Shown here: positions 3,088-49,912 of the stretch, piece after piece
How positions within the stretch are numbered: position 1 is the stretch's first letter
Layout of the letters: every line of letters begins with the position of its first letter
Assembly (NCBI GenBank): GCA_000708835.1
Contig: DF237537.1
Location: 1-54,057, forward strand
Length of the DNA: 54,057 nt
Reading direction: 5' to 3'
From: Klebsormidium nitens
Taxonomy: Eukaryota; Plantae; Klebsormidiophyceae
Made by a program: the position numbers and the translations under genes
The notes under the pieces: model-generated
What the model saw: only the letters and a program-made list of their open reading frames with translations
Told to the model about the DNA's origin: nothing
The model's database searches: none

Positions 3088-6000
3088 TTACCGGTCCGCC
3101 GGGAGCGGGGTCGTCCGCATGGACCCGGCCAGGTTCATCTTGCTCCCCGGCCGGCTGCTTCCCCCTGTCAACCCCGCCTGCCTTCGCGTGCGCTTCACGT
3201 CCATCTCCACGATCTCCACCTGTGACAATCCAAGAAGATCTCGCGATTAAGGTTTTGAGGGCTGGCTAGCTTGCAGACCGATGCTCGCTCCATGCCGAGC
3301 GAAAAATACGAGTTACATAGGGGCAATTGCGACAATTAGTTCACGAGCTTGGTTCTATAGGGACTGTCGACGATTCTGGAGAAGCAGCTTGGCTCGGGCC
3401 CCGCTTCCAGTCTTACGACTGGTCGCGCAGGACGGATTTTGGCCCTCGGAGGTCTGAAAGTTCATCCGTTCATCCGTTCATCATTCGTTACAATCTGGCA
3501 GCGTTCCCTGCACGCCGTTCCGCTTCCAGTCAAAGGAGTCCCTCTCCGAACCTTTTGCCTTGGTTATCAAGCTCACTGACTCTTCGCTCGTCACCACCGC
3601 CAGGAACTGACATGGAGCCACCTGTAACCCTTAAAACGACGTGAGCACTGAGGACCATATAACTCCGCTTATCCGGCCGCGTTTCCACTCACCTTCCGCT
3701 CCTATCCGACGAGCTTCCGATTCAGCTTCGCAACCCATACGCAGCTCGAAGCACTTGTAATACGTCCACAGCTCCGGATGATAGATTCCTAGGCGTTTCA
3801 CTGGGGAGCTTGTGACAGTCGCCCCAAGCTTCCGGCTCATTCCGCTCACCTTCCGCTCCCAGTCGACGGACTTCTTCTCCAGCTCCGCCACTTTTGCTTT
3901 CAGCTTGATGTAGTCCATCACGCACGGCAGCTCCGGGTCCTCTTGCTGCTTCTTCAGCGCCGCCTGCCGGTCCTGCGCGGCCGCCTGCGCGGGGTTCACA
4001 GGGTTTTGACTTCAGGATTGTTAGCAGCGTTTAGCGTCGCCTGGTGATCCTGTGCGGCCGCCTGCACGGTTAGGGGTTTAAGAGGCCAGCCAGAGCTTCA
4101 AAAGTAAAAGCATAGCGTTTCATTGGCCCTGCGCCGCTGCTGCGTTATCGACCTTTCCGCTGCGTCTTCAGCGCTGCCTGCCGGTTCTGCGCGGCCGCCT
4201 GCGGGGTTCAGGGTCTTCGAGTTGGGATTCTAGAAGGAATCCCTAGGCGTCCGCCTGGGGGATTGATTCTCTTTCATAGGGGTTTAGATTTTCGCGTCGC
4301 CACCTGACGCTTCGCGAGGCCGCCTGCCAAATGAAGGGTTTTGGGGTATGGAATTTACAAGTTCCACGTGTCAAACAGAGCTTTGAAGACTGCAGTGCGG
4401 CGCGACGGGGTCAAACAAGCTCCGAATCAGAACCCGGTGCAGAAAAACACTCTTGGACCAGGTTCCTTACTGCAGCATTCTATGGAGGCGAACTCCAATG
4501 AGATAACGTCGAAGGCCTGGAGACGATAAAAGCCAAGAGATTACTGTTCGGTGAAGGTGCGAAGCGCATGGGCTTTGAGTTGTCGATCCCAGTTAGATCG
4601 TTCTCGCCATCGCACCAAAGCTTCAATTCGCAGAAGAGATTTTGGGTCTCTGAAGAACTTCTGTCGGTCGAAGCGGTGCAAGCCGAGCTTTCCCTTGATA
4701 CATCCGCTACCCGTATGATTAGCACAGGTGACCTGCGGATTCAAAAGGCGGATCGCCCGCCCTCTTACCTTCTCATCGCCAATGGTCAGAATCTCCTTCT
4801 CGTACCGACTCAGCAGCTCGCGCTTCTCCGCCATCGTCTTGGCGAGCCACGTGCCCTGCCACGTCAGCCCGCTGAGCTTCTTTTTGAGCGTGTTGAGGAT
4901 CTGCGAAGCGCATTGATGTAGTCACGGGGCTTCAATTGATCTGCATGTTTTTTAATTATCAGGCAATGGGGCTGATCATGGGTTCTGACAGTTGGCCGTG
5001 TGGGAGTGTCATGAGAGGTTCTTGAAAATCGGAAACCTCGGCTTCTAGTCAAAGTTCGACGCAAGATAGGATTGTCCTGATCCATAGCTCTAAAAGTACT
5101 TGACGGGTATAAATAGCTTACTAAGAACGCAAGCTTAGCACCTTGTTGGTCCAGAGTCGCGCACTTAATCCGCACTACTAAGGTATCTTTCACCTATGAT
5201 CAAGCGCGCTTGCGCTCGCTCGCGGGTCGCTGAAAGCGACCGAATCTTTTGCTACGACTCGCGTCATTGCCGGGAAAGCTCCCGGCCCATCCGCTCACCT
5301 GTAGCGTCCTTGCTGCCGTCAACTTCAGCTTGATGAGCTCAGCATTACGCTCCTCGACTTTCTCCAGGAACTGCTGGTTCTGGATCTTGAGTTGGTCGAA
5401 ATCGACGGTGTTGAGCACCTCGCCCATTTCCTCCTTCTGCTGCAGACTGGACTCAACCTTGCTGATCTGGAGAAAGCAGGGAAAGGGAGAAAGTCAATAA
5501 GAAGCGGGACGTGTTTTGCTCAAGACCTGCCTGTCTCAGCTCTGTTAGAATATTGTGAAAGCAGGAACGCAAGAAGGTCACATGGAAGCCGGTAGGCCGG
5601 TAACTCAACCTTGCTGATTTGAAGAAAGCAGGGAAAGGAAGAAAATCGGTCAGAAGCGGGACGAGTTCTGCTAGAGAGCTCATTCAGCCTTGCTGATCTG
5701 GAAAAAAGCAGAGAACGCAAGCTTGAAGCGGGACGAGTTCCGCTCGAGAGCTACCTCAATCTCGCTGTCGTGGAAAAGGAGGGAACGCAAGATGGTCACA
5801 CAGAAGTGGGAAGACCTTTGCTGAACCGCAGACTGAACTCTGCTAAAATTATGAAAGCAGGGAAACGCAAGAAAGTCAGTCAGAAGTAGGACGAGTGTAA
5901 AGAGCTATCACAAGCAATGGAAGGCGAACGTGGAGTTGAGACAACGTTTCTGAGATCCCCGTTGGCTACGTTTCTCCTTTGGCTCCATAAAGCGTTGGTT

Positions 6001-13558: not shown

Positions 13559-13858
13559 TAAGTGTGCTTTTAGCCTGAAGTGACTCAAGTTCACGACTTG
13601 GCAGGCTTTTCGACAAGTGATGGACGGTTGAGCAGTTGAGCTGAGCTTTTCAATCCCTCCAGACACCAGGATAGTAGGCAGCCCGGGGCCCTACGCCTAT
13701 GAAAACCTTTGAAGAGCATGCTAGCTGATGGCGCACTCTCCCGTACGTATCCGCATTGATCGAGATGGTCAGCCGGGTCAGCAAACTTATCGGACGGTAC
13801 TTACAAGTCGTCAATCCAAGTTCACGAGGCCAGAGCTCTCGCTTCTGGTACATCGTTA

Positions 13859-13994
13859 CAGCTTCTCCCGACCATCCTGCCAGACTTAGTGTCATATTCT
13901 AACTTGGAGTGACTAATTTCAGACACTGAGCAGCAGACTGACTAACTTAGACTAATTCTCCCACTAAAACTGGTAGGATGGTCGGGAGAAGCTG
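13859..13994. mobile_element. Small MITE, 136 bp, TA target-site duplication
   Basis: TIR CAGCTTCTCCCGACCATCCT(G/A)CCAG, with TA at 13857-13858 and 13995-13996. Confidence 0.8.
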
Positions 13995-14906
13995 TACGTA
14001 GTCAATCGATCCGACTAGCTCAGGTCACCAGATGAATGTTAGACGGATCTGGGCCCAATCTGAACCTGGACTAGCTCGATGCACCACAGCACATGATTCG
14101 ACCCTGCTAGATTGCACCAGCGCGTCCAAGGGGGGACGAGGGGATGGCCGCGCCACCGGACCAGGCCGGGCGCCCCATACACACACCATACACACGTATG
14201 AACTGATGATCGGTCATATGATACAATGTCGGATATATCCGAACTGGCATGGTTTCGACCGTCGTAGTATAATCATAAAGTGAACACCGCCGGGCCTTGT
14301 TAATGAAGTTTTGAATGAAATCATGGTATAATGAATGTATATGACCGGAGTGATGACTAGAAAACTGTCTTGAGCACCACCGGACGGTCGGCCGTGGCAC
14401 TGCCTGCATAGGATATCATTGGGGCGGATGCATACAATCATATGCACGACCGATCAGAAAGTTGTCCATGCAATAGTCAACTTAGTAAATTGAGTCCGCA
14501 TATAGTAATGATTCTAGCTATAGCTATTCAGCTATAGAAATCAACAAGAAATCAACGTTGGATTCTAGCGACACTCTAGCTATAGTATATAGCTAGAAAT
14601 CCACGTTAGAGATTGAACAACATCGGCCAGCCAAGCTTGGACAGCTGAGCAGGCTCATGCATGACATGAATGATTCTAGCTAGCTTGCGCACCACGATTA
14701 TCAGTGCAGCCGCCCAGGTATTAAAGCTATTTGAAAACTTAGGTGTTCTGTTGTTAGCTAGCTGGAAAGGTGCTCTGATCGAAGCTCTCTTTCTGCATCC
14801 TAATTCCAATAATTTTGAGTTTTACAACCTCAAAAAAGGTACTTGAAGGGACGTGACCAGATAAGTTCACATTCTAACCCACTGCCAGCATCGGATATAC
14901 AACAGG

Positions 14907-15601: not shown

Positions 15602-18600
15602 CTACGCAATTGGCGTTGTCCTGAACTCCAAGTTCCCTAAATTCCTGAACAGATCCATCCCCAGTCTCTCCGCCACCATTCTCCCGGGGCACTGCCGGCC
15701 AAAGTTCTCGGGGCCGAAGGAGGCAAAGTTGAGCACGTGGGCGGCCAGGTTGGGCCGGGTAACGTCGACCCTGCGTCAGCAAGCGCTACGTGTCAGCACC
15801 AGATGAAGGGAAATTGCATCTCAGAGCGTTACATCAAGGGATTTGCATTTCAGAGTATATCGTAAGAGTAACCAGACTCAAAGTTGGACGGCATCCGGTG
15901 TGACTCGAGTCGGCAGCTACCGTACACGGGTCGACGCCGTCACAGGCAGTCGCCAACTCGCTCTTACCGATACAACCCCCTGGAGCGAAAGAGAAGCCTT
16001 CTGCAGAAGCACGAAAAATAAAACAACTAATTATAGCAGTTTCAGAGCGACGACCTGGTTCTCTGCTTCCAGAACTAAGGAAGGAAGCCCTGAGAACGAG
16101 GGCCCCGTTGCAACGGGCGACACGGCATCAAAAGGGAGGACTTGACCTTTGAGCCAGGGCCGGACTGCCCAAGAAAAGGATACCAAAAGAGCATACAATC
16201 CAGGCAGACACACGCACAGAGCAAGAATGCGTTTGAGATTAGCAAGAGCATGCCCCAACGGCTCGACTCCCGTTTAGAAGCATGGAGACCATAGCTCACA
16301 GGTAAGATTGAGAGCGGACAAGAATCAAGAGCAGAAAGAGAGGGCTAAGGAGAGGCGCGACTTGCTTTTGCGGACAGGGTCAGATTAACAAGGGTGCGTG
16401 CACGTGTACGGACGAATCCTTGCCGGCTGTCGTTATACCGTGTCTTATTTTGCTGCTAATACAGTAAGGAATGCCGTTTTTCCTTGACGCTAAGAGTTTG
16501 CTTAAAGGCTTACGTAGTGTCGTTGCTCCTCCTGTGTGTTGGACAACGAAGAGGGCGTTGGTAGGATCAGAGCACATCCAACAACGAGAACGGAGAAAGC
16601 AACAGGGAGCTAGCTCGAGAAAGGCGACGTGAGAGAAACACAGATCGTAGAAGGTGAATCACAAGGGTAGAATGATCAGCACAATATGTTAAGGATACCA
16701 CAGAAAGAGTTGTAAGCTAGCGGACAGCTTGCGGACAGCCCTTACGTAAGGGCGTCCGCATGCACCGACGGATCCTTGCTGGCAGTCTTTATGCTGTACA
16801 TGACTTTGGTGCCCGCCGGGAACAGGTGCCGTTTGCCGTCGATGTCGATCTCCGTCGGCTGCTGTAGGTACGATGAGACAGAAGCCACTGGGGGGTGCGC
16901 GCGCATCGCCTCGTACATTGCGTTCAAGTTCGCCTCGTCGCTTCCAAAGTCAAACTGCAAAAGGAAGCAAGGGGAAAGTAGTTACGATAATCAGACTCAG
17001 TCTACATTAAGATAGGGTGCTTCATGCATATATATTCTCATACTGTATTCTCATGCATACATACTCTTTCATATGCGCTCCCGTACTTCTAAAAAGAGCA
17101 CCCTCACCCATCTGCCTGCAACTGCTGGTGCTCATCTCTCAAAATACCAGCTCTGAAATCCCATCCGACAAGAGAAAGCCGGGCCTAGAAACAAGACGGG
17201 AAAGGCATACAGTGAAATTGCGGGCTTCACAACCCGTCTCGACGACGGCTTTGAATTGAGCAAGGAGAAATGCACCGGGACGGCCGGCGTCTCAGTCAGA
17301 CTTGATTGACCGTTGTTACTTGAGAGAGGCGAACTGGCAAACGAGAAAGACGTCGTGATCACAACTTTACCACCATGTTGAGCACCCGCAGAAGATCCGA
17401 CGTACAGACGTGACAGCCGTGTACGCAGAATCGTTTTTGCACTCCCACTTCCAACAGCTTGGCAGGAGATTTCTTCATTAACCCGATGCAAGCCACTGGT
17501 CCACAGTTTGGCAGCGACTTTCAGAGCCGGCGTTATAATGTCAGAGCCGTGACCTTTTTGAGGCTAAGTTTGCTGGTAGGACACGAGTCCGTTGGGAGCA
17601 TTGTTGTACAAGATGAAGGTAGCTGGCCTCAGAAATGCGTATTCAGAGACTCTTTTCAATCCGTGAACCTCAGAGCTGGATCAGCGAAAGGCCCCGCTGT
17701 AAACGACATTAGAAGGAGCGTCGTCTCGCACTGATTGAAAGTCGTTGCGAAACGGCCGCGACGTTAAGGAATGGAACCGGGTCGGGGAAGGCGTGAATTC
17801 AAAACGCTGACGTCGGCAACATAGGACCCACCTTAAACGAGCTCGGCAGGAGTGTCGTTGTATAGAGATGAAGGTCGCTGGCCCCGGAATTGCCGCGACG
17901 TTAAGAATCGGCACCGAATCAGTGAAGGGGTGATTGAAAACTCTAACGTCAGCATCACACGACCCACCTTAAAGGAGCTCGGGAGGAGTGCCGTCGTATA
18001 CGAGATGAAGGTCGCCGGCCCCGGAATCGCCGCGATATAGAGGATCGGCATGAGCGCGTCCAGAAACTTCTCACGATCGTATCCCTTCAGGTCTGCGCCG
18101 GTCACGAGGGGAGACTGCGCGAGCAGAGCGCGCACTTTCTTCTCTCCGTCTGAGAGCCCCCACTTGAACATGCCAATCGGCGAGATCTGTTGTGGAAGAG
18201 GGGGAAGTAAGGTGCCTTTTAACGTGGGAGGAATACAAGCTTTCCGGTCCGAGACAAATGGCAAGAGTCAAGGAGGCACAACGTGCGATACCGGAGCTTG
18301 GAGAAGAAGCTGGGAGGGCCACAGAGCAGAATATAATCAGCCGAGAACCTGCGTTGTAAAGCGGGGAAGGTGCGGGTCTGATGTGAGTTAGCACGTAACA
18401 GATTCGAACGGGTCCTTTTTGGTAATCGCGGGTGCCTTTCTGAAGGGGTGACTTATGGCTTTTGCAGCACCACCGAGGAGGATTGGGGCCGCTTGTTGGT
18501 GAATTCAAACGCCACGAGGTTCGTAAGGGAATTGCAAGGAAGAATGTCCACGTGGGGGAAAAAGCCAGAAGAAAGCTTTTTGCTGGGGCCGGGGGATACG

Positions 18601-21600
18601 TTGTGGATCTAAAGCTGTGGAGCAACCGTTTCCTTACCTGATGGGGTCCCTTAAAGGTGAGGAACAGAGCTAAAACGTATGATTGAAGACACAGAGCAAT
18701 GGAAGCTGGACTGGGATGTGAGCGGAGGGCGGTATCGTAAGCCGTTCTGACTTTCGTGGAGGCAACTGTAGTGTCCCAACCGACAAGCATCGAGAACGAG
18801 GGGCACTAAACACAATTGCTCTCAGAGACTAGACGAGAACAAGATAGAAGAGGACGACAGCGGAACGGACGAAATCCGCAGATTCAAAAGAGGCGGGTGC
18901 TTACATTGAGAGCAACCGCTTCTGAAGCTCGAAGTATGGCAGACGAGCAAAGTAAGGGAGACGGTTGTGAAGCTATGTAGAAGTGCGAAGCAGGCCCAAA
19001 TTCTTGTAGCAGAAAGATTTGCCTTTGCGGCGTGTGATATCTGCGTCAGTTTGTGTCCTGTGTTTTGATATCGTGAAACTCGTCTTAGGTCCTGCAGTAA
19101 GAGCAGCTAGAAGAAAATAGAAAATCCATGGCTGTCGCTATCCGCTCACTCTGAAAATGCTGTAGGGTACGATGCCTTTGGTCACGAGCTCCGTCGTCGC
19201 CTTGTCTGGAGTAACACCTGAAGCCAGTGAATCAGTCGTCATAAGCCAGTGAATCAATCGTCAAAGCACGACAATTCCTGCACAGTTTTAGATTGAAAAG
19301 ACACTTCTTTAAAGCTAGAGTGCCATGCATTGTCTCAGAAGTGCGCCCGAGGATACGGAGCGAAACCGCGCAGTCACGCCCTGAGGGGAAAGATTCGTCT
19401 ACAGAAACTGGGAGGGGAAGCTTACACAGAGACGCAGGCATCTTTTACCGGATGCAAGTCCCTGCACGAGCGAATGGATTTCTGCACCGGTGACGCACTA
19501 CTCAAGCCCCAGGCGAAAAGGTCAACCGGGCAAAGAGAAGTTTCCACGAGGCGCACGAAGCTCGTACCGAGCCAAGAAACTCGAGACAAAGTGCAGAAGT
19601 CTCACCAAAAACAACGTACAGGATGTAAGCGGTGCTAAATGAGAACGTGTCGGGCTCGCCGCCCTTCACTTCTTTGGCGAAGGCTGAAACCAGGGACTGC
19701 GCAACCTGCGGGGAGACGTGGACGAGTGTTGACGTCAATCGCTGACGTCAATTTGGAAAAAGGGTCGGAAAAGGCCGCCCCGGCAGAAAGGACACTGTTT
19801 GCTGCCAAATCCGTACAAGAAACAACGTGCTTGAGTGCGATTCAAAAAGGAGAATGTGAAGGCGCTTAGAGGCAAACAGTGACGTGACACCTGAAGACTA
19901 AGGGCCACAAGGAGAAACCATTGACATCACTTAAAGCGCGGCCGACATCCAAAAACGTCAACGAAGCAATTTCTGCACATCTTATCAAGGACCCTCCTCG
20001 GACCGACAGAACAAGTAAACAACGATATCTCAATTCTGTCAACAGCACTCGCCCCTCCAGTTTATGCAGATTTCCAGATAAGGCCACGAATCCATGCTCC
20101 GAGAAATGAGATTTCAAGCGCGCGCAACCGTCGATGGCTACCGGCTCAAGCGAATGAATTCGGCACGGTGTTTTGTATTGGCCTTCACCCTTCCACGTCT
20201 CACGAAAAAGTTCGGGGAGCCGTAGTCTTCTCTCCAAGTCCCCCCTCTCTACAAGCGCCGAGCGTTTCGGGGTTGGTTCTCTCAACTTATCATTGCTCCT
20301 GGTCACGACCTGCTCGAAGGTAAAAAGATCTGGCCTTATCTCGTCCTCCATAACCCCAACTTTCCAAGCCGGTTTTTGGGTGGATTCTTACCTGATCCTT
20401 GCCCCTCACAACAGTCGCCAGGCTCGTTTTCCATTTCTCAATATCTGCCGAATAGCGTTACCCGTTCTCAGGGAACGCATCTCTCGGTCTCTCCTTGCCC
20501 CTATCCCGAATCGCTTCGCTTATGAAAAGGATGGCCTCCTCTGTTCCTCGCCATAGCCTCGCAGAAGTTTCAGGGGGGCGGTTTCTCACCCCATCCTTGC
20601 CCCTGGCGACGACCGCCTCGCTCGCGAAGAAGTCTTGCACGATGGCCTTGATCCCAATTTCTCGTTTTTTCGGGGGGGCACTCTCGCACCTCATTCTTGC
20701 CCCTCGCAACTATTCCCTCGTTCGTGACGAGGTCCAATCAAGATGGCCGATAAGATTACAGAACGGCTCAGGGGGGCGCTTTCTCACCTCATCCTTGCCC
20801 CTGGCCACGACCGCCTCGCTCGATAACCTGACCTAACCTCTGACCCCCCTTTTTGCCTGCTCAATCTCCAGGGGGGCAGTTTCTCACCTCATCCTTGCCC
20901 CTCGCAGCGACCGCCTCGCTCGTGAAGAGATCGATAAAGATGGCTTTGAGCTGATCTACACGTTCCTAAAACATTTCGGGGGGGGGGGCGTTTCTTATTT
21001 CATCCCTGCCCCTCGCAAGAACCGCCTCGCTCGTGAAGAGGTCCATCAACAGGGCCTTCCTGTTCCTGCCCATAAGCCCACAGAACGTTTCAGGGGGCCG
21101 ATTGCTCACCTCATTCTTGTCCTTCAATGAGGTCCACGAAGACGGCCACATTTGTTCTAACCTGATTGCCTTCAAAACCTTTCAGGGGGCAGTTTCTCAC
21201 CTCATCTTTGCCCCTCGCAACGACCGCCTCGCTCGTAAAAAGGTCCATCAACAGGGCCTTGATCTGCTCGCGCTCGCCCGTCCCGCCCGCCGCCTTGTCG
21301 CTCATGAACAGGAGCATGTTGTCGGGAAACCTGCGGGCGTCAGGCTGACGTCAGCAAGCAAGCAAGTCGCAGAATGCAACCTCCCAAGTCGAGACGCGAG
21401 TGAGTGTTGGCTGCGAACCCGCGGGCGTCAGACCGTTGGTTTGCTGGCAGGCGACTTGAGAATCGCAACCTTGCAGATCAGGAGTGTATGGAAGATAGAA
21501 CACAAGAGACATCCAAGTGCCATGCCCACGTGTGTTTGCAGTATATCACCAAAGTGCTTTGCTGTCAATCAAAGTGGACGCGATTGTTTTCCCCGTCGAT

Positions 21601-33600: not shown

Positions 33601-34059
33601 GGTCCCGTGTTCAAACAGGACGGATGTACAAGTTCGACCCTGAGTTCATTCACAGCGCCTCCTTGCCCCTAATCGGTAGCAAACTTACTCCAAGTCGCTC
33701 ATCCAAATGTCAACTCAGCCTTTCATTCGTATGTACGTTCGTAAGAACCCAGATCTTTATGCAGAGCAGAATGATAAGCCGCTCTGCGGATGCGAGTCTC
33801 ACCCGCGCCAAAGGGCGCCACCCGGATGTCCTTCCCGGTTATGTCGATGTCCTCGGTTAGGAAGCGCTCCGGCAGAAACTCTTCCGCCCGTTCGAAGACG
33901 GTCGAGTCTCGAGACAGGCCCCGGGTATGCGCCACAATCTGCAAACGTACGCAAAGTTTTTGTCGATCTGCTGACTTGTTTTTCATTATACGAACGTGAA
34001 TGAGTCAGTTCAACCTTCCCACCAGTAAGCGCTCGCTCGGGCGGGAAACTGCTGCGCCT

Positions 34060-34490
34060 GAGAAAAGACGGCCGGATATCGAGGCAGGCCCCAAGTATGG
34101 GCCACAATCTGCACACGTATGCAGGCTCTTTTATCGGATCAGCTTACTCGTTCATTGATGGGTTTGATACGAATGAGTCGCCTTCATCTTAGAAAGGGCT
34201 CGGCAGGAACTCGTCCTTCGGGAATAAGGTCGGGTATCGAGGCAGGCCCCGGGTAGGCGCTCCAATCTGCACACCGCGTATATATGTCTTCGCAGACTTT
34301 AATCTTTTACAAGTTTCCGCGCTATACTCAAGCGGCTGGGGAGCGTTCGCTTTGCTGAGTCCAGACGGTAACTCGCTCCGATGGTTCCGGGGAAATCGAC
34401 GCGTAGAGAAAGAAGGACGGACTTCCAGATAAAGCCCAAGTAAGTGCCACGATTTGCATACGGTCTGTATACGTCGGTCTGCATACACTT
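34060..34490 (-). repeat. Three decayed acceptor echoes of the PERF exon
   Basis: + strand GCCCCxxGTAxGxGCCACAATCTGCA recurs; echo starts 34108, 34266 and 34453 versus real 33938. Confidence 0.85.
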
Positions 34491-35369
34491 TGCTGATCTG
34501 TCAACTGGTTTTATGCTAGGGGATTGGATGTCGAGCGTTTGATTGCAGATTTCACGTCAAGAGAAACAAGAACGCAAGGTGGGAGCATCTTATAAGGTTC
34601 CCGCACGAAGGGCCTGACTCAAGTGAAATTTCTAGCTGCCAAAAGCTACTTCGCCCATGTTATCGAACCTGCTCTGAGCGCCGAAAGCAAATCAATCGGA
34701 GCGAGTGAGCACTTTGGCACGGGTTCTCCTGCGCCTCATGCGTACTAGAACAGCTCATATGAGAACAAAGTTTCACAGTTGCAGACTCTTGCATGAAATC
34801 TGTCATGCCTTAATGTCCAAGAGAAATAACCCACCAGAGTCTGCGCCGGGATCCTGTAACCCGATATGGTCGTCTCGCGGTCGTTCATGTGGGGCCCCAA
34901 AAATGGGCCGATGCTCCGGTAGCGGAAGTGCTCCTTGATCACTGCGCGAAGCATCGAGCGGCTTGTATAAGCTTCTCAAAGTGGAAAGCAGCTTCTTAGC
35001 AAATATTGCAACCACCATTCAATCATAACAATACCTCTTTTGATAGTTCTGTGTGAAGCTCGAAAGGAAGAACGGGTTCCAGGGGAGGACGTTCTGAAAT
35101 CCCCTTCTTTCCATATTGAAACGGCTTCGTGCTCACCCGCCGCGCGTCTTATGGTCGGCTGTACCTCTCCTTAGTACTCTCAAGGAGTAGAGCAGCTTCC
35201 CCGGGTCGTCTCCACGCACCGCTTCCCCCTCATAAGACGGTTCAGATCTTACTTTTGCACCAGCTGGATGTGACGACGGCAGCGTTCCCCTCATAATCTC
35301 ACAGCGCCCTTTTCGCTTCAACATCGAACACTGTCATCGAGCCACTTCAGAGATCGTGTCAAACTTGAC

Positions 35370-35935
35370 CTGCCGAAAAGAACGTCAGATTATCCAGGAC
35401 CTCCTTTTGCACCGGGACGCCGCGGCCAAACGCTGCACCCGCCTTAGAATCCAAACCATCCTTTTCCAAAAGACACCAAGACTATTACAAAAAATTCCAG
35501 AGCACTGTGTCAAAACTTACCTGCCGCAAAGTGCGGCAGATCCTCCAGCTCGTTTACGCGCACCGGGCGGCCGCGGTGAACGTCCGCGCCCCCTGAAACC
35601 GCCCTTCTCGATTGACACCAAGGACCATCCAGAGCCATCCTAGAACATTGCGTCAGATTCATACTTGCCAGCAAGTACGGCAGGTCCTGCAGGTCTTCTT
35701 CCCCCACCGGCCAGCCGCGGCCAAGCGCCGTGCCTCTCTTCAAATCCAATCCGCCCTTGAAAAAAACAGACACCAAAGAATATTCTAGAGCCCTTATGAA
35801 GCGCTGTGTTAAATCTTACCCGCCAGCAAAGACTGCAAACTCTCTAGATCTTCCTCTTGCACCGGCCGATCGCGCCCGACGACTGCGTCGATCTGCGCTT
35901 GCACTCGCCGCCGCATTGCGGGGCGCCGCGTGAGC
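35370..35935 (-). repeat. Four decayed donor echoes of the I/J-helix exon
   Basis: Echo exon ends 35820, 35665, 35521 and 35370 versus real 36005. All retain GT; several still read GRGxPVxExDLxDLPY. Confidence 0.9.
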
Positions 35936-36210
35936 TCGCGAGCTTTGATCGACACCAAATAGGACAGCAAATTAACCGTCCAAAGATCATAGTGTCAAAC
36001 TCACCTGCCAAGAAGTACGGCAGATTCTGCAGGTCGTCTTCGCCCACCGGCCGGCCGCGCCCTACTACCGCGTCAATTTCTTCTTGCACTCGCCGCCGCA
36101 TCGCGGGGCGCCGCGTGAGCTCCGCGAGCGTCCATTCGATGGAGACGCCGCTCGTGTCCACCGCCGCATACAATGTAAGACTTCGATTTTGGTAAAGTAA
36201 GTTTCAGGTG

Positions 36211-37099: not shown

Positions 37100-37760
37100 G
37101 ATGCGGTTCGCGTACAACCACTTCCGTAGCTTGCCTTTGCGTACGTGGCCCTGCGTTGGACGAGCGCCAATATTTCTTGACATAACATGTGTGGTTGGTA
37201 GCCGTTGCGTTCAGAAAGTAAAGTTGCAAGCGAATAAGCTCATCGCGACTCCTTCTCTTACGCTGAATGTTCTTACACGGGCTTCGATTTGAACGCACTG
37301 CTTCCCACATCTCAGATTCTAATTTCATTTAAGGAGACCAGACAAAAAGAGGGATTCTGGCTGTCTACACCCATCCTTTGCCTACGTTTGCCTTGCCATC
37401 ATCGGAGGTTACATGCGAACGTAAAAGATTACTGGCGGTCCAAAGCCACGCTTTACGGTTCAGGTCGAGTAGAAAAGCTGCACCTGACCAGTAATTCCTT
37501 CGCGTTCATAAAAGCTGTCGCTTTTCTCACAATCCGGTTCACGCAAACGCTCGGGTGATAGAACAGTGTTCCGGTCGAAGATGCCCATATGACGGAAGAT
37601 CTTACTAAAAAGGGACTGAAAGATGACCGTATCCAAAGGCGAGATGTCCGCTCAAAAAGGGCACTCAATAAAAAAGGTGTTCGACAATATACCCGTCCCT
37701 GAACGAGATCTTCTTTCGCACATTGCAATCCGGAACGAGTGCCCCAGTAGGAATTGCCCA
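37100..37760 (-). repeat. Mixed echoes in intron 37836-37041: two donor echoes (~37520-37600, ~37680-37760) and one acceptor-side echo (~37100-37190)
   Basis: + strand TTCTCACAxTCCGGTTCxCGxAAACGCTC and TACCCGTCCCTGAA recur; - strand TTGGCGCTCxTC...CGCAAAGGC recurs. Confidence 0.65.
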
Positions 37761-38109
37761 ACTGAATAAAGCTCTTACTCGGGTCCGCCCATGAATACGT
37801 CGAAAAGGACCAGAAATCTATCTTGCCGTCGCTTACCCGTCCCTGAAAGAAGTTGTCTTTCTCACATCCCGGTTCGCGAAAACGCTCAGGACCGGTAGAA
37901 TGGTGCCCCAGTCGAAATCTCCCATCTGACGAAAGCTCCGCTGCAGGCTCTGGTACAGCGCCTCGCGCGCGTCGGTGAAGCCCGGCTCGTCGCGCGCGGG
38001 AAAGCGGACGCCGAACAGCGGACGCATCATGGTGTTCAGGTTGGCCCTGGACGTGACGAGCCGGTGACGTCAGCAAACATTATTTGGATTGTAGCCTGAG
38101 GTTTCGTCT

Positions 38110-39090
38110 ATCTATATTGCGCCTCGCGCGCGTCGGTGAAGCCCGGCTCGTCAGGCGCCGGGAACCGGACGCTGAAGAGCGGCCGCATCATGGTGTTCAG
38201 GTTGGCCCTAGGCGCGACGAAATCGTGACGTCAGCAATCTTTTTTGCCTGGGACTTGAAGGTTTAATTTGAGAATCGAATTTGCCTTGGTTGCGCCTCGC
38301 GCGCTTCGGTAAAGCCAGGCTCGTCGTACGCGGGAAAGCGGACGCCGAACAGCGGCCGCAGCATGGTGTTGAGATTCGCCCTGCACGTGAAAAGATGGTG
38401 ACGTCAGAGGTGGTTAATCGTTATCTATGTCCTGGGACGTGATGTTGTTGAAAATGAAGTCTGCGTTCACGGTCGTAGCGAATTGCGCACTCCGATGAAA
38501 TCGGGCTCGGCGCGCGCGAGAACAGGACGCTGAAGAGTGGCCGCTGCATCATGGTGTTGAGGTTCGCCCTGCAATAAAAGTGCTGACGTCAGCGCAAATC
38601 GCTGCGATCTGCGTCCGCTGTTTCTCAACCTGTGTTGCGCCTCGCGCGCTTCGGTGAAGCCCGGCTCGTTGCCTGGAACCGGACGCCGAACAGCGGCCGC
38701 ATCATGGTGTTCAGGCTGGCCCTGCGCATAACCAGATCATGACGTCAGCAGGAGACCATTTGTCATTCCTAGCTTTACGGTATTGAAGCTCGACTGTTGC
38801 TTCGCGTCTCGGGTAGCCAGGCTTGTCGCACGCGGGAAACGGGACGTCAAACATCGGCTGCATCATATTGTTTAGGTTGGCTCTGCAAAGGAGATGCTGA
38901 CGTCAGCGAGAATCGGATGGGCACCTTCAGTACTCTAATACTAGTATTAGAGTAAATTACAAGTATGAACTTCCAGCTTTCTTTTTTCGCGTCTATGGTG
39001 TAGCCAGCTGGCAGCTTGTCGCGCGCCCGGAAATTGACTTGATGGAGCAGCCGCATCGTAGTCCTCAGGTTAGCCCTGATATTGAAATCA
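38110..39090 (-). repeat. Six decayed ~170-bp acceptor echoes of exon 38046-37837
   Basis: Echo starts 38207, 38380, 38568, 38721, 38882 and 39075. Each has AG plus about 90 nt of exon-like sequence (ANLNTMMRPLFGVRFP...); five have a CTGAC(G) branch motif. Confidence 0.93.
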
Positions 39091-42000
39091 GCAGAAACCA
39101 CCTTTTAGCCCGAGGTTTGACGGGACTCGAGCTGAGGTTCGTGATTGAAAACAGCGCCCCACGAAAGTCAGAGAAGTCTTCTTGTGGCAAAGAGCGTTGG
39201 TCAAGTGGGCGAAATGCGCAAGAGGGGGAATGTCTCGACCAAGATTCGACAACAAAAGGCAAGAATCTGAATCTTTCTGAAGCCGCTTTTGAGTCTTCTG
39301 TCGAAAGGTAGTATGTTTCAGCATTCCAGTTGGACAACACCCATAGTGCGCTGGAGCGGAAATGCCAAACAGAGGTCTCGTCCCCACGCCCATCATTGGA
39401 CCTCTCACGACAGCCCCTTAGCGCTCGGATGAGTGACGAAGTCATAGTGAGCACAGCAGCGTTGCATGCGCAGTTCTTTCTTCTCATCGACATCTTTCCA
39501 CCCTCGTACGTTTTTCGAAGCTCACCGGAAAATACGATCTCTCGGCTCGATGATGCCCCCGTTCTTCTCGCTCTCCCGCTTGAGATGCTCGATGAGCAGC
39601 TCAGTTTCTTCGAACCGGATCGAAACGCTGGCCTTCACTGCCTTTGTGGAAAGGAGGTGGAGGATTGCCAGTCTTCGGGTCCTGCGGTAACAAGACAAAA
39701 GACGTGTTGATTGTTTGAATGTAAAGGTGCCCACGTGCAAAGTTCTTTCCGTAAAGACGTGTGCGTTAGCATCTATATAGTCCGATTGGAGGACTTCTTT
39801 GATTCTGTTTACAGAAAATCAACCACCTGGGATCAAGCCACGTGCAGTGGAAACCGCGGTGACCGAGAACGTCGGATGTAATTTTTGGTAAGTTGGCTTA
39901 TATGAAAGCCCGTAAGCGCGCCCGCGTCCCTTTTGCGTACATGATCTGAGGTGCCTGCCACCCTAGTTGCAGAAGCCAGCTTGCAAGAGAGCTGCGGCAG
40001 ATTGAAAGGCAATCTCATCAAAGACTTCGCTTCCCCCGAAAGTCATAGGTTCCAAAAGCGAAGGCAAAAACGTTTCAGCTTCCTTTGAGCAATGCGTGAG
40101 GGAACCAGCGGAGCAACATGCCGGTTACGCAAGCTTAAAAAGGTAGCCCAGTATTGTTAACGTGCCCAGGAACCGGTCGAATGTAGTCCTATTAGCACTC
40201 TAGAGTCACGCTGCCTGGTTTGTCGTCGCACTGCTATGTAGAAGGTTAAGGTGTGTCGAATCCAAACGCGGACTGGAGAAATTGTACACCCAGCACGTTA
40301 CATGGATCGGAACAGAAGGCTCGGAACAAAAGCAGTGTCTGGTCGACGTGAAACCTAATGAGCCTCAACTTAAATCCGCCAATAGTCGCCGTAGCCTGAC
40401 GCGAAGATGCTCTTCGGATGGAGCGTGAGCGAGATGCGCTCGGGCAAAGGCGGTCGCGACGCAAATTCCTTGTGCTGGGAGTTTCAGGGAAATGGGACTT
40501 TCGATCAGTTTCCTACAAGTTACGCACACAGCCGAGTCATCTGTCCGATCCATAAAAGGATGATTGATCGAGTCTGTTCTCATCTAGCATAAAATCAGGA
40601 CAGCTTTTGGAGTCACGGTGCCTTTCCACCGAGATGATGTGCTTCCGGTCCGTAACGAGAGTCTTTCAGCTCAAAGATTATAACCACATATAGGATTGCT
40701 TATAGAATTTATCTATTATCTAGCACACAATCTCCACATAGACACACTTGGGGGTAGGGTATTAGTCCACCTACAATGATCGAGTCCCATGTTGAAACAA
40801 TAGAAATTTTCAGCTCAAAGACTACAAAATTGGTCTCGGGTTGAATGAGTCGCTCATATTCAGAAGCCGGCCCTTTCATTCTGCCATAAGTTTCTGACGT
40901 CAGTGACTTCACATGGGCAATTTCTCCAGGTATTGCATAACAAAGGGCACAGAAGATTACTGTTTCTAGTTGGACAGCAATGCGCCACCGCTTCTAGAGC
41001 TGTGATAAGTAGCAGGGTTTTGCAGTTATATAGACAAGTCGACCAAAGTCGATCTAAGAGAGTACATCGCTTCTGAAGGAATTGACCTAACTGCTTGATT
41101 GATAAAACACGTCTTGTCTGGGACCAGGGTTGCAATGTTGTGTAATCTCTAAAATTAGCTGTTTTTAGTAGACCCTCACCTTGGTTACCAGAACTTCTTT
41201 TATGGCCTCATACGAGCTGACGTAGACCGCCAGTTGCGGCCCTAACCAGAAGCTGAAAACGCTTCCGTACCGCTTGGCCTGAACACGGAAAGCTTAGCTG
41301 ATTAAAGAGATAGAATTGTTTTCGGGAAAAACTGTGGAAGATTGACAGCGACCAACCTAAAAAGCAACTCCAGAGACAATTGAATGCGACTCTTGCCAGA
41401 AGCTGAAGGAGTTTCTGTACAGCCGGCATGAGAAACGGATTGGCGTGATAGACTTAGAAGGGGGATGTGGATTTCAAGGAAAGGGCAGCTCATAATCCTC
41501 CACCCGATTGCTTCAATAATGCATCACTGGGGGATGGTCAACTAGACCAGTCTGCGTGGGATTGGAATATTTCATTCCTGTATCAAACTCACATGATTTT
41601 CAGCTGCCTTGAGCTTAAGTCAACAGGAGTCTTTTGAGGTATGAGTTATTTGATTGCTGAAGATGCTACTCATGAACAACAGTGCCCCGAGCTCAGAACC
41701 TACATCTTAGCCCTTAGTTGCGGATCTAGATCTCCGCCAGCTAAGCATAGCCTCGATTTCAAGAGGACACATTTTCTTGACATACAGCAAGCATGCTTTG
41801 CAGGCTGTATCCAGAACAAGAAAGCCAGATCATCGGGCTGCAAACGTCAATGTGTGAAATAGGCAGCTTTATCTTTCCATTCGGAAGCACCATTCTTCCG
41901 AGCGCGTGGTAGACGAGGGCGCGTTGCACCAGAAGATGAAGACGGGCCAAGGCATTGGGCCTGGAGGGATCCCCCGAGTTCTCATGACCTTCAGATAGTG

Positions 42001-44838: not shown

Positions 44839-47800
44839 ATGGAGAATGGACGCAAGAACTTCTGGTCAGCGGACCCGGAGAAAGTGGGGACTGACTCTAA
44901 GATTGAAAAGATACCAGCTGAAGGACTGAGCATTAAGGAGAGGGCTGTTTACAGCTCGTTCTCGATGTTGAAGGATGCGCCCCTGTTTGGGCCGAGGGAG
45001 GGGAACCCTTACAACGATGCGCTGGGGACTCTGAAAAGTGCCAAGCTGGTGAGACAACCAAGTATGGAATTGAAGGAGATTACTGAGCTTTCTTGAGGTG
45101 TGATGAGGAACAAAACCTGTCCTTACTTTGGAATCACTTGATTGCAACTATGCACGAACTCATGTCAGCCCTGCTTCCTGACACTTTCTTGACCTGCCCT
45201 TGGTGAAATACAGTCCCCTTTCTTTTATAAGAGGCTCGTTGAGTCTCTAAGAGATGGTAACACGATTTTGTTCAGAGGATAACGAGCAATCTTTTCCCAG
45301 GTGTCAAGTTTCTTGGGCAGAGCCTGATTGTTCTAGAGAGTCCTGCACTTGAGATCAACTTTTGAAGGGGCAAGCAAAGGGCACCAAAAACCTTTCCATA
45401 TAACCATTTTGAGTGAACCATCATTGGCTGTTAGAAAGCATAAGTGCTCGTCTAACTGTGGGCAACGAGTTGCGCGTTATTTCTCTGCAACGCAAACTAG
45501 CTCACTTAGCAGCCCAAGTCTGTCTGAATTTCCTTGGAAATCCTGGACCCTCGGAAGGGCTTGAACTCTGAAAGCCGTATACATGTCTTGCAGATTCCGG
45601 CAGGCACCGTCACCTATAACGCCTCCCACCCCCTTCGCCTGCTGTTCCGCATAACCGGAACCGCCGCCAAGATGGTCTTCCAGTCGGTCTCCTTCTACCT
45701 GATCATGTCCGTCCACATTTTCCTGCTGACAATGTACTACAAAGTGGGGAACAACCACACGCGCTCAGACTCGACCTCCATCGAGTCTGGGTGGCCGTTC
45801 CTGAGGTCTGGTACTTACGCGGGGTTTCTTGGAGTGCTGACGTCATTCTGCCTGGTCTTCCAGATGACGCAGTGCTACAACAGGTGAGAAATGACTCTCA
45901 CTCTGTCCCCTGAGTGCTGTCTTTTGGTATTTACTCACAGCCCACTAGCTTAACAAAACTTTTTATAGGGATATATAGCCACGTCTCTCTTGAGGTTTCC
46001 AAGTTCTTATAGTGATCCTACAAAACCTAGTTCGTCACAAACGCCTCATCAATAACAGCTCCCCGCAGGAAGACTCTCACAGTCTCTCTCCTGTGAATCT
46101 GACCTGTCTCTCACGAGCGTAGGGCGGAGTTTAACCTGGGCATAGTTCCCAGTTGAAGAACGACTTGAAAGCGTCATCAGAGGGCGCACATGAGAATGAA
46201 GCATGGCTAGCTTTTTCCCCCTGTTTGAAATGATGGCTAACTCACCAATTAGAGCCAGTCTTTGACACCTAAAGATAACCAAGTCTGTCTACAAATCTGA
46301 ACTGGAATGCTTCCTATCCATAAGACTCACCGGTCAAGAAAGGAGAGAGCTTGAGCTGGCTGCCAGTTCCTCAATGCTTATTACGCGGTCTTCTCCAATC
46401 TCTCTGAAGGGAACCCTAGATTTGGAAACACTCACAAAACTTTTCTGTATGGCAGATTCTTTGAGCAGTACAAAGCCTGCATCGACGCCATCAACTGCGC
46501 TTTGTACGTGATACGAGACAGCTTGAGCCGGCTGCTATATCGACGAATCCTGAAAAGCCTCATAAGGCTCGACAACCTGTTGTGCAGACGTTCAGCTTTT
46601 AGTTTTCCCCCACTTTGTTTTGCAGGTTTTTCGAGCAGTACAAAGCCTGCATCGGCGCCATAAACTGCGCATTTGCGTTCGACACCGCTCTCCGCTCACT
46701 CTTCGACGACCACAAGTTCGAAGGGTCCGGCCAAATCCGCTTGGAGCTGCACGGTTATTGCATGGCCATGCTGTATACGGGCTTCGGCTGGCTGCCCCAT
46801 TATATTGAGAATAACCTGCATATGGACTTTGGAGCGCCTCCACGAGACCGGACTCCTCAAACCGGAAGAGGAACAGCGGATCCTTGAACTCCCCGGGGGC
46901 ACTCGTCCGTACGGCGAGGTAAGCAGTATCTGAATAATCTAGCGCGAGGTTTTGCCGAACACGTGATCCAAACCCCTTGGCCCAGAAGTCCGAAGCGGGT
47001 CTGAACATTCGGATCCGGTTCGAACACATGGAATGTCCGGAGACGTACTGAAACCGGTCCAAATGGAAATCGAGCTGGGCCGCAATATGGTAACGTCGTT
47101 TTGGCCGGCATGAATACCCTTAGGTGCTGATGTAACTCACAGGCCTCACAAACCTGGCGGTGAATGATTTACGCTGAGTAAAGCTAGGTTATGTACTGTG
47201 TGGAAAATTCACCTTCGAAGAAGGCAGTGCCAAGCTCCTTTGGGTGCTCGTCTCTTTTCCTCTTTGCACCGCTTACATAAGGAAGCAAGTTCTTTTGAAA
47301 AGAAAGCTGAGTCCTTTTCTTTGGAGACGACTCTCATCAAAACTGATGTCATCCGTTATCGTCCTTACTCAGGAACCAGCTAACCAGACGGTTACTCTAA
47401 GGAAAGGAGCATCTACCTAAAAGCTAACCAGCCTTGGTTAAAGATAACCCATCTCTCCCGGTGACAGATATACTGCCTTGGAGAAAACGCCTTATACCGA
47501 GAGCACGAGTTGGGGCACATTTCGGAGCGCTCACTGGACCGTCTCGACGGGCTCTTTGGAGCGCTCTCGGCAGCGATCGCAACAGTGTATGAGCATGCTG
47601 ACATGCCGGTAAGCGTTGGAAGAAGAGAAAAAGCGTCTTATATAGCCGAGCCTGCCGTCCACAGCCTTTGAGGATTTACATAACGTACGCTTTAAAAGCG
47701 CTGCTTGCTCGGAGAAGCAAGACAAATTGACGAATGTGTCAAAAGGCCCTTTGATCACTTTGACCAGCATCCGTAAGCGAAAGCGATCTTGGAAGCGACT

Positions 47801-49912
47801 TCAGAAGCAGTCGGATTCCGCCTGCTAAATAGGAAGCCTGTACGTAGTTAAACGATCTTGCCCTGTTCGAGCAAGGCCCGTTTACTTTGACTCAGAAACA
47901 TGATCCGATAAGTAGCCACTTCGAATCTCATTGGGTTGGAACGGCTAAACGAAGGGGCAAGGATAACTTGCTGACGTGTCCTTTTTGCCAGGTACCATTT
48001 GCAGTCTACCATTTGCTCAACATCATGGCACTGGGCTTTCTGATGATCTTGTCCTACACTCAGGTACGTAACAGAAACTTTCTGCATCAGACAAAAGCTT
48101 TTTCAAAGTAACCTTCCAGAAAGTAGACGTGAACTTGGATTGAACGGTGTGACCATAAAGTGTGACCATAAAGTTGGTCGAGTCAGAAACACATTAGCGC
48201 CAAAACGTAGCTCCAACGAATTGTTAGCCTTTCCTTTCTCAGAATTAGATTGCCCGCAAAGAAGCTATTCATGTAAGTAGGTTTTCGGTTCCCATGTTGC
48301 TTGATATTTGGAGGAACAAGTCGACCCCTGTTTTGCTGAGGTGAACGGTGTTCGATCTCATAGTTTTAGTCGAAAGGCTGCTACAACGTCCTTGGCCAAG
48401 TATCTGTACCGGTTCAAGGGGCCGTCTTGATTTATGCAAATCAATGAACGTGCTTAAAACGTCTGCATGGTTTTCAAGGCGGATCACATGCAGGAACAGC
48501 ACAATGAACAAAGACCTTGAGCTACACAGGCGAAGCTCGCTAAGACAAACCACCGAGAATAGCGGAAGCTGGACGAGGCAGCCGTTTTCTGTGGTATTTT
48601 GTCCACGCTATCCCACTGTCCCGGGAGCTGATCTTTCCCTCCTGGAAAACAACCGGAAGCCGTTCATCTTCATCACTCAGGAGTTACGAAAGAACTGGTT
48701 TAGGCTGCCAGCTATCAACTTTCTTGGAAGATACAACCCTTGTGTCGGCTAGCGTTCACATTCGCAGTCGGCTTTCTCCTGACAAAGATCGGTGGCCCTT
48801 AGTATTCGCCCGCGAGCTGCGCTAAGAAGGACCTGACAGCGTTCGAACTTCGGTCGTCACGATGCGGGTTAACTAAAGATAGGCTTTGGCACGCCTCGGC
48901 ACAAAATCAGTATATTGTGTCTTGTTTCCAAGGCAGGACTACCTGGACAACCTCGTGCTGGCCTTTCAAACGGTTTAATATGCACCCGCAAGCTTGATCG
49001 CAAACGTCACGCTGGCAGACCCTTCGCTGCTACGTCAGCAACACTTTAAACACGTTCAAAACTTCAAACACGTGTCAAATGGACACGTTTTTCGTTCCTT
49101 TGGCGCAAGTTTTTTTTCGAGCCCATTTTACAGCATCACTTTCATGTTCCTGACGGTTTCTCGCACAAAGGAGTCCGCGAGCTCGCAAACGCGCTGGCCA
49201 TCCTCGTTTGCCGCCACGTCATCAGAAGCTAGCACGTGTCTCCTTTCTCTTGTTTCAGGTGTCTTTGAGCTACTTCTACAGCATCGTGCCAGAACTTTCA
49301 ACGGTTTCTGCACGCTGGGAATTTGCGAGCTCGCGAGACCGCTGGCAGATCTCTTTACTGCCACGTCAGCAAGTACTTGCCAACGCGTGTCTTTGTTCCG
49401 TTCGTTCAGGTGTTTTCGACCTACTTTTACAGCATCATCCCATTGTTTTCTCACGGCTTTTGCACCCTGTGGATCCCGCAAGCTCCCCCTTTCCCTAGTG
49501 CCAGTGCAACCGCAAAATCTGACACGTGTCTTTCCTTCAATGGCAGGTGTTTTGGAGCTACTTTTACAGCATCATCCCAAAGTTTTTTAACGATTTTGTG
49601 CACTTTGTGGATCCGCGACTGGCGAACACGCTCTTGGCAGATCCATTTTCTAGCCCCACGTCAGCAAAAAGCTGACACGTGTCCTTATCCAATTGCCAGG
49701 TGTTTTCGAGCTACTTCTACAGCATCATCCCAATGTTTCTGACGGTTTATTGTACTTTGGGGATCCGCGAGCTTGCGAATGCGCTGGCCGATCCGTTCGG
49801 CAGTGACGACACCGACATTCCGGTCCTGGACTACGTTTCCGGCCTGCACCACACGTGCGACCAGTTAATGACCATTTGGACCGTTCCCAAACCGCAAAAG
49901 GGAGAGGTTTAG
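44839..49912 (+). CDS. Bestrophin / UPF0187-like channel protein, about 405 aa, with one +1 frameshift near 46800-46830; exons 44839-45048, 45594-45883, 46626-46918, 47468-47608, 47992-48063, 49700-49912
   Basis: Motifs RLLFRITGTAAKMVF, LGVLTSFCLVFQMTQCYNR|FFEQY, MP|VPFAVYHLL and ELANALADPFGSDDTDIP fit the bestrophin family. All introns are GT-AG. Exon 3 is 293 nt, one base more than its phases allow. Confidence 0.75.
46440..46503 (+). repeat. Acceptor echo of bestrophin exon 3 that also has a donor (48-nt candidate cassette exon 46456-46503)
   Basis: GGCAG|ATTCTTTGAGCAGTACAAAGCCTGCATCGACGCCATCAACTGCGCTTT|GTACGT versus real TGCAG|GTTTTTCGAGCAGTACAAAGCCTGCATCGGCGCCATAAACTGCGCATT. Confidence 0.85.
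49085..49699 (+). repeat. Four decayed ~150-bp acceptor echoes of the bestrophin last exon
   Basis: Echo starts 49110, 49259, 49410 and 49547 versus real 49700. Shared core ACACGTGTC-pyrimidine tract-CAG|GTGTTTTxGAGCTACTTxTACAGCATCATCC. Confidence 0.93.

Follow-up and report, generated by a model that had tools for sequence, protein, structure and literature searches.

Why do so many introns in this stretch of the Klebsormidium nitens genome contain decayed copies of their own exon/intron boundary, and what process put them there? The window (the whole stretch of DNA that was analysed, 54,057 nucleotides) was scanned junction by junction. It contains 14 local tandem arrays made up of 42 decayed copies, called echoes here, in 14 introns of four genes: CCDC113, two P450 genes and a bestrophin-like gene. 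This bears out the original prediction of at least 12 introns and about 40 copies in four genes. Its description of introns as built from such copies was too strong, since recognizable echo accounts for only about 23% of the length of the introns. Arrays sit on about a quarter of the examined junctions, and their copies are 60-95% identical. In all 14 arrays the units lie head to tail and contain one exon/intron boundary, and 35 of the 42 echo alignments cross the junction position itself. Eight arrays are made of acceptor echoes and six of donor echoes, so that both 5' and 3' exon boundaries are duplicated. Self-BLAST of the window gave 33 direct self-matches, 30 of them separated by no more than 850 nt. 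A chunked, more sensitive version gave 14 repeat regions, compared with none in a shuffled control; 13 of these are tandem, and one region (37503-39078) contains two arrays, which makes 14 arrays in total. A repeat between 410-483 and 1202-1272 (offset 792) is not tandem and was left unclassified. Rfam and tRNA scans of the window returned no matches.

The arrays of the first three genes are all on the minus strand. In CCDC113, exon C2 (3984-3850, boundaries taken from the alignment with a relative) is echoed on both sides: array A1 (3518..3734) holds two donor echoes of the working, or master, donor at 3850|3849, and array A2 (4030..4229) two acceptor echoes of the master acceptor before 3984, both keeping AG. 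Exon C4 (5466-5299), which matches the Pfam domain CCDC113_CCDC96_CC in an exon-level search (E 7.5e-17), has at least three acceptor echoes in array B (5603..5896), with a period of about 152 and AG decayed in two of three. Both P450 genes match p450 in the same search. In P450#1, a single donor-side echo of exon e8 (16954-16746) lies at an offset of 356 (array K, 16396..16456), two donor echoes of exon e7 (18186-17968) form array C (17607..17913, period about 137), and nine donor echoes of exon e4 (21330-21201) form array D (20265..21125, period about 100). Array E (23603..24251) consists of acceptor echoes of exon e2 (23476-23291), two of them clear (23603-23948) and weaker ones extending to 24251. 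In P450#2, array F (34034..34274) has two acceptor echoes of exon Ef (33938-33801) within the RNA-confirmed intron 33939-34834, and array G (35181..35943) has five donor echoes of exon Ed (36163-36005) within the RNA-confirmed intron 34942-36004, with GT kept in all four copies that reach the junction. Exon Eb (38046-37837) is flanked by two donor echoes (array H2, 37503..37723, within the RNA-confirmed intron 37041-37836) and by six acceptor echoes (array H1, 38123..39078, in intron 38047-39526), the latter with a period of 156-196 and AG kept in six of six. Array L (41385..41439) is one acceptor echo of the exon starting at 41278, its AG decayed to AT. The plus-strand arrays are those of the bestrophin-like gene, whose Bestrophin_2 match is weak and under the curated cut-off. 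Array I (46446..46503) is one acceptor echo of the exon starting at 46626, at an offset of 170 and with AG kept, and array J (49114..49631) has four acceptor echoes of the last exon (49700-49909 plus stop), with a period of 142-153 and a steady drop of identity to the master with distance. The exon maps of P450#1 and of the bestrophin-like gene come partly from conservation and reading frames and not from RNA. The master copies run on into exons that RNA confirms or that the relative has in conserved form, so the terminal unit is the authentic junction.

We consider that these arrays are probably minisatellites of the "mirage" type, in which the unit spans one exon/intron boundary and the copy at the end of the array is the working junction. 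The founding event of such an array would be the tandem duplication of a segment of about 150 bp that overlaps one junction. No readable microhomology was found at the decayed unit boundaries. Unequal exchange between master and echoes, or slippage of replication between them, could then add or remove units in register, while selection would fix the exon-anchored master and let the echoes decay and be pushed outward. The spacing of echoes has a median of 152 and a mode of 140-160, for units that range from 72 to 265 nt (100 nt in array D), and TRF detected no repeats with periods from 34 to 71 in the window. The copies of one array have a common exon breakpoint, and each array lies on one junction. 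Nearly all echoes are nearest to the master and not to another echo, giving star-like identity matrices, and in four of the seven larger arrays that were examined (D, H1, J and B; rho -0.73 to -1.0) echoes farther from the master are less identical to it. A pair of echoes in array D that are 95% identical and two units apart shows what appears to be later in-register amplification. The strict polarity of the echoes had been presented as a biological property; it is a geometric necessity, because any tandem duplication across a junction must give it.

How does the splicing machinery cope with these copies? Assembled RNA contigs indicate that four array-bearing introns of P450#2 are spliced out whole at their authentic sites, always with the copy that runs on into the full exon. 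The joints are 33938>34835, 34941>36005 and 37039>37836, and at the fourth intron the contig has a loose end at 38047, with upstream exon sequence resuming at 39527. No joint in these four introns uses an echo, at a depth of 2-7 in assembled contigs from which rare decoy use or products of nonsense-mediated decay could escape. The decoys would go unused since an echo does not have the partner splice site that a complete exon has; in donor arrays, the site met first in the 5'-to-3' direction would also win. The suggestion that echoes create decoy splice sites and proto-exons holds in one respect, since 30 of 35 echo positions carry the dinucleotide (AG in 17 of 20 acceptor echoes, GT in 13 of 15 donor echoes), but the RNA joints bypass them.

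Comparison with an uncultured relative, whose homologous loci come from independently assembled metagenome contigs, informs on the age of the arrays and on their effect on introns. One of two exon-sized matches to a P450 exon among protein representatives led to the relative's contig; the P450#2 exon of the relative was found by a word-indexed protein search, two earlier exon-peptide scans of metagenomes having given no matches. Past CCDC113 and P450#1, the contig of the relative carries a TIR-NB-ARC gene and a retroelement integrase, and synteny stops there. The homologous loci of the relative also bear arrays, mostly at other junctions, and lack arrays D, A1, A2, F, G, H1 and H2. Echo decay (about 0.18 per site) is lower than the part of the inter-species third-position distance (0.67) that falls to each lineage. 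Every copy that could be detected seems to postdate the separation of the two species, so array turnover is fast. The intron of array D, which has no such array in the relative, measures 395 nt there versus 1472-1477 nt here (from two exon maps). Across 23 homologous introns the difference in intron length between the two species correlates with the difference in echo span (r = 0.68). Both species have arrays at three of about 48 homologous junctions, an overlap that does not reach significance (p about 0.04-0.16), and at two of the three the units have different breakpoints. These three cases could reflect inheritance or hot junctions. We do not claim shared hot junctions: the p value of about 0.02 obtained with two genes rose to that range once P450#2 was added. 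The exon blocks that flank all compared array-bearing introns are conserved in the relative, and the inspected junctions are common to both species. Echoes thus lengthen existing introns, as had been proposed, but the accompanying intron gain and exon birth are not seen: no new intron or new exon derived from echoes was found among the introns compared with the relative.

Among the other explanations for these arrays, the one that survives best, while still unlikely, is duplication directed by the splice site, the idea favored in the original prediction, in which splicing-coupled events on the DNA such as R-loops, a paused polymerase or reverse transcription of lariat intermediates would cause breakage or copying at the junction itself. 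The anchoring to junctions is real, and many acceptor echoes carry a branch-like motif (CTGAC/TGACGTCA) together with AG. However, neither the junction nor the branch point marks a fixed end of the units. They contain 33 to 124 nt of exon and about 31 to 123 nt of intron (exon share 0.19-0.80), and this lack of a fixed place for the junction argues against cutting at the splice site. Donor and acceptor arrays are also near-equal in number, and a free 5' exon intermediate could not be the source of the intron sequence in donor echoes. We rejected the more specific idea that acceptor echoes are cDNA of lariat intermediates, given the intron sequence in donor echoes and units that start well upstream of the branch motif (about 50 nt in array H1). 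The junction-centred duplication process originally proposed thus stands for the anchoring, which exceeds a null model (see below), but not for the centring, since the junction may lie anywhere in the unit.

Somewhat less likely is pure survivorship, the simpler alternative offered with the original prediction. Uniform duplications of any size would occur everywhere, and only those tolerated by selection would be visible, with no need for a bias toward junctions or exons. Selection alone does account for the polarity and for why no whole-exon or within-exon copies occur, and the roughly uniform position of the junction in the unit is what random overlap predicts. Yet the introns here are 350-1500 nt long, roomy enough for purely intronic units, and the window contains no purely intronic or intergenic tandem array, with zero arrays detected by chunked self-BLAST in about 25 kb of other sequence. 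Unit lengths, moreover, bunch near 150 nt instead of being widely spread. In a null model of three genes, junctions are expected in a share of 0.27-0.37 of tolerated duplications for 150-170-nt units, and all 11 arrays of these genes are anchored (p about 1e-5 to 1e-6). Granting junctions a twofold detection advantage raises the share to at most 0.54, with p at most 1.2e-3. The relative gives six of six in the modelled genes. Hence, an anchoring beyond random duplication plus survivorship is supported. We also considered a "selection-anchored ratchet," with purging of contraction products that harm the exon; it is powerless while echoes are still identical to the master and therefore leaves the founding bias unexplained. 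For the bias toward junctions we tentatively favor duplication of one-nucleosome (or one-Okazaki-fragment) length on exon-associated DNA, a length idea that comes from the modal unit length only. Selection would then remove all products that do not overhang exactly one junction.

Very improbable, in our assessment, is that the echoes are functional, that is, decoy splice sites, splicing enhancers or parts of alternative (mutually exclusive) exons under selection. AG and GT are retained at 0.91 and 0.95, versus a mean of 0.78 at other positions, and several echoes have intact open reading frames. Most of this retention is expected because the signal of the master cannot change: pooled retention is 88 of 95 (0.93) versus a neutral expectation of about 0.87, among copies that are not independent. 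Most echoes thus keep the dinucleotide, as had been noticed, but AG and GT are not clearly conserved over the neutral expectation and the excess is marginal. Differences between echo and master amount to 0.174, 0.150 and 0.326 at codon positions 1, 2 and 3. Echoes also differ more from one another at the third codon position (0.363 against 0.245), as selection on echoes might produce. In contrast, changes found in a single echo are evenly distributed over the three positions (54, 50 and 43); the echoes therefore decay neutrally, and the surplus of third-position differences between echo and master fits silent drift of the master. Echoes also lack a second splice site, no RNA joint of the four introns falls on one, and the majority of arrays are not shared with the relative. 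A cluster of mutually exclusive or cassette exons was rejected on the flat private changes, the RNA joints and the truncation of echoes at a common exon breakpoint.

There is virtually no chance that the arrays are mis-assembled or over-expanded repeats, even if one amphioxus mirage array with aberrant assembly has been reported: copies diverge by 5-40%, array G is matched without differences by RNA-library contigs of two studies, and the same architecture appears in the relative's metagenome contigs, all in line with the earlier view of an artefact as unlikely. The claim that the arrays are gene-specific and not a transposon family proved equally sound. Self-BLAST revealed no similarity between different arrays, and a transposon or Introner-type element was rejected, dispersed related copies not being found and the only distant self-matches in the window being one paralogous gene pair and a few palindromes.

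The mirage-type reading of these arrays has several implications. If their density holds genome-wide, K. nitens would be a good natural system to study intron growth and the choice of sites by the spliceosome. Echo arrays explain much of the difference in intron length from the relative, and the window offers 35 natural decoy positions, including acceptor series in which splicing takes the last of as many as seven AGs. In this genome, gene predictors can misread echoes as exons or as splice sites. It is possible, if rather doubtful, that in Klebsormidium and independently in amphioxus duplications of nucleosome or Okazaki length, preferring exon-associated DNA and filtered by selection, are a main driver of intron lengthening and of rapid divergence in length, with occasional whole-exon duplicates giving rise to mutually exclusive exons.

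How do these arrays compare with known systems? In the Rogers model, an AGGT-containing exon segment is tandemly duplicated and an intron is gained, as in a potato RdRp gene (PMC4974935) and in Drosophila (PMC2891723). As in the arrays here, splice signals are copied by a local tandem duplication within a gene, but there a duplication within an exon creates an intron, whereas here pre-existing introns are merely lengthened. We rejected this model for the compared array introns, which sit between conserved exon blocks at junctions that, where inspected, are common with the relative. Closer is the 37-bp VNTR in intron 7 of human F7, where the first unit spans the exon 7/intron 7 boundary and, of several identical donors, the one farthest upstream is chosen (PMC1557585). 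It resembles our donor-side arrays in having an authentic 5' splice site followed by silent pseudo-sites; it differs in being a single locus with a short unit and identical copies, and has no counterpart to the acceptor-side arrays. The closest system is that of the amphioxus mirages, and the original statement that no description was known does not stand, this architecture being already published. Mirages occur at 5' and 3' boundaries, many of their copies retain AG or GT yet are unused by splicing, and their length and copy number are unstable, by a mechanism that was stated to be unclear. They share with the arrays described here the boundary-spanning unit, the presence at both boundaries, the kept dinucleotides, the undisturbed splicing and even the unit length (150-160 and 157 bp in globin genes, versus a median of 152 here). 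A unit of about 150 bp common to an alga and a lancelet suggests a general, testable cause at the DNA level. Amphioxus units are mostly young (81-100% identical), whereas those of K. nitens show greater divergence and decay gradients, and the amphioxus cases were reported gene by gene, whereas here a substantial share of junctions and of intron length is affected in a streptophyte alga. We found no published description for Klebsormidium in the literature; the K. nitens arrays are a new and very dense case of this published architecture.

The arrays of echoes, i.e., local tandem copies of an exon/intron junction, are real. When every junction was compared with its own intron, we catalogued 14 arrays and 42 echoes. 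Donor-echo arrays occur at exon C2 of CCDC113, exons e8, e7, and e4 of P450#1, and exons Ed and Eb of P450#2. Acceptor-echo arrays occur at exons C2 and C4 of CCDC113, exon e2 of P450#1, exons Ef and Eb and the exon starting at 41278 of P450#2, and two exons of the bestrophin-like gene. The AG is retained in 17 of 20 acceptor echoes and the GT in 13 of 15 donor echoes, and self-comparison of the window found no sequence similarity between arrays. Hence, the original prediction of gene-specific, decaying junction copies was an accurate description. Self-BLAST of the window gave 33 direct matches, 30 of them separated by at most 850 nt, and a chunked, more sensitive search gave 14 repeat regions against none in a composition-preserving shuffle. 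All were tandem (37503-39078 holding two arrays) except the fourteenth, a non-tandem pair (410-483 versus 1202-1272). TRF and a repeat finder recovered the same arrays.

The introns of P450#2 (33939-34834, 34942-36004, 36164-36879, and 37041-37836, minus strand) were taken from RNA-library contigs placed on 33600-39500; a loose end at 38047 resumes at 39527. The intron at 36164-36879, between exons Ec and Ed, is apparently GT..GG rather than GT..AG. This joint comes from one RNA contig, is positionally unambiguous, and keeps the reading frame consistent; the acceptor may be non-canonical, or the strain or assembly may differ here. The exon maps of CCDC113 and P450#1 come from homologous loci of an uncultured relative, on JGI metagenome contigs reached through an exon-sized protein match, as was its P450#2 locus. 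For these two genes, exons share 78% protein identity, introns are unalignable, and splice sites are common to both species. Pfam confirmed the CCDC113 and p450 exons; in the fourth gene, the last exon matched Bestrophin_2 weakly.

Could the arrays simply be random duplications that are tolerated only at junctions? We modeled a unit of length u dropped uniformly along three genes with exon maps, tolerating placements that lay entirely within an intron or spanned a single junction. For u of 150-170, junctions account for 0.27-0.37 of tolerated placements, whereas 11 of 11 arrays in these genes are junction-anchored (p about 1e-5 to 1e-6, and at most 1.2e-3 even if anchored arrays were detected twofold better). 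Beyond these, two arrays in the bestrophin-like gene and the one at the P450#2 exon starting at 41278 are also anchored; in the same genes of the relative, all six arrays are anchored and none is purely intronic; and chunked self-BLAST found no arrays outside the four genes, in about 25 kb of the window. Survivorship alone is therefore not enough: the arrays are genuinely biased toward junctions. The strict polarity of the echoes, noted previously, is pure geometry: a tandem duplication must leave its truncated copy upstream of an acceptor and downstream of a donor.

Echoes retain AG at 0.91 and GT at 0.95, against a mean of 0.78 at other positions. Yet identity to the master (the working junction joined to the full exon) sums changes on two lineages at neutral sites, while the AG/GT of the master is itself immutable. 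With intron-side identity at about 0.75, the retention expected on one lineage is about 0.87, versus 88/95 observed when pooling non-independent copies. This gives no solid sign of selection on decoy AG/GT sites. Echoes differ from masters by 0.174, 0.150, and 0.326 at codon positions 1, 2, and 3, the 1:1:2 profile expected for a neutral echo and a master changing only silently. Changes private to a single echo are flat over these positions (54, 50, and 43), and echo decay is therefore neutral. Echo-echo differences (0.241, 0.249, and 0.363) show a third-position excess, expected if echoes were copied at different times from a slowly drifting master. Within each array, all echoes share the exon breakpoint and lack the far splice site; with the flat private changes, this argues against echoes as functional coding pieces. 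They are neutral relics that make introns longer.

The identity matrices are star-shaped, with the master the closest partner of almost every echo. Identity declines with distance (rho -0.73 to -1.0) in arrays D (P450#1), H1 (P450#2), J (bestrophin-like gene), and B (CCDC113), with no such trend in array G (P450#2) or in two arrays found in the relative. Two copies lying two units apart in array D are 95% identical, which shows later in-register amplification. In array I, of the bestrophin-like gene, a 58-nt core is 86% identical, BLAST reports no similarity over the remainder of the 170-nt unit, and the weak resemblance seen there by eye hints at gene conversion. These dynamics fit a minisatellite anchored at one end in an exon under selection.

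The relative lacks arrays A1 and A2 of CCDC113, D of P450#1, and F, G, H1, and H2 of P450#2, and has its own at exon e6 of P450#1 and exons 2 and 3 of P450#2. At three junctions both species have arrays, with different unit breakpoints at two of them; sharing of this extent is not significant (p about 0.04-0.16, hand calculation). The two species differ at 0.443 of third codon positions (Jukes-Cantor 0.67), against an average echo decay of about 0.18 on one lineage, so detectable echoes mostly postdate the split and arrays turn over fast. In a comparison of 23 homologous introns, length differences correlate with differences in echo span (Pearson r 0.68, p 3e-4). Recognizable echo accounts for 23% of intron length in the window, against 8.5% in the relative. 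Thus, of the proposal that introns are built from echoes, the lengthening stands and the whole construction does not. Compared with window 3100-25000, contig Ga0590114_0001664 of the relative has CCDC113 and P450#1 directly adjoining, in opposite relative orientation, and lacks the approximately 8 kb lying between them in the window, the 9512-11032 gene included, which suggests that the lineages differ by an inversion or insertion.

The window has other features. Two plus-strand paralogous genes flank P450#1 (9942-12149 and 27820-30503; long open reading frames 9512-11032 and 27387-29041), with 59-71% DNA identity over about 1.3 kb of aligned pieces and no echo arrays in either copy. The palindrome TGACGTCA occurs 15 times versus 0.84 expected, 10 times independently of array H1 (1404, 7012, 19730, 19743, 21346, 38065, 40895, 43692, 45838, and 52892) and five times within it. 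It lies 7-20 nt upstream of several acceptors (21346 for exon e4, 38065 for exon Eb, and 19730 and 19743 for exon e5), and candidates for its identity are an extended CTGAC branch-point motif and a bZIP/CRE-type site. Self-complementary stretches of about 100-140 nt, 70-85% paired, lie at 14897-15032, 13857-13996, and 22413-22514. A short dispersed element (36220-36252; inverted copy at 26084-26156, 81%) has no Rfam or tRNA match; its 32-nt core (36221-36252) matches, with one mismatch, abundant RNA contigs with unrelated flanks in all four runs. Another RNA contig, of depth about 500, shares with the window only 32 nt of the P450 I-helix region (36136-36167) and continues into sequence absent from it, indicating a far more expressed paralogous P450 elsewhere in the genome.

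How do the units arise? Copy spacing has a median of 152 nt, with 16 of 55 values in 140-160 and 30 of 55 in 140-200, and TRF found many short repeats with periods up to 33 and none at 34-71, so the length spectrum is bimodal. The position of the junction within the unit is nearly free (exon share 0.19-0.80). Units of a typical length but no fixed register speak against cutting or copying centered on splice sites or branch points, and thus against the junction-centered, splicing-coupled duplication initially put forward. This pattern favors length-limited duplication, in which survival would require merely overlap with an exon edge; judging by their usual sizes, the unit length could reflect one nucleosome or one Okazaki fragment. 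Among the papers searched, mostly outside subscription journals, we found no description of such arrays in Klebsormidium. Junction-spanning arrays themselves have been published as the “mirages” of amphioxus, which affect both kinds of boundary, leave splicing undisturbed, are unstable in length, and have a mechanism described as unclear; their globin units of 150-160 and 157 bp resemble those of K. nitens. Among donor-side arrays, the human F7 intron 7 VNTR was used to show that the first donor is chosen 5'-to-3' (PMC1557585). Arrays of this kind are already on record; the novelty lies in the host lineage and in the density, with roughly one in four of the examined junctions carrying an array.
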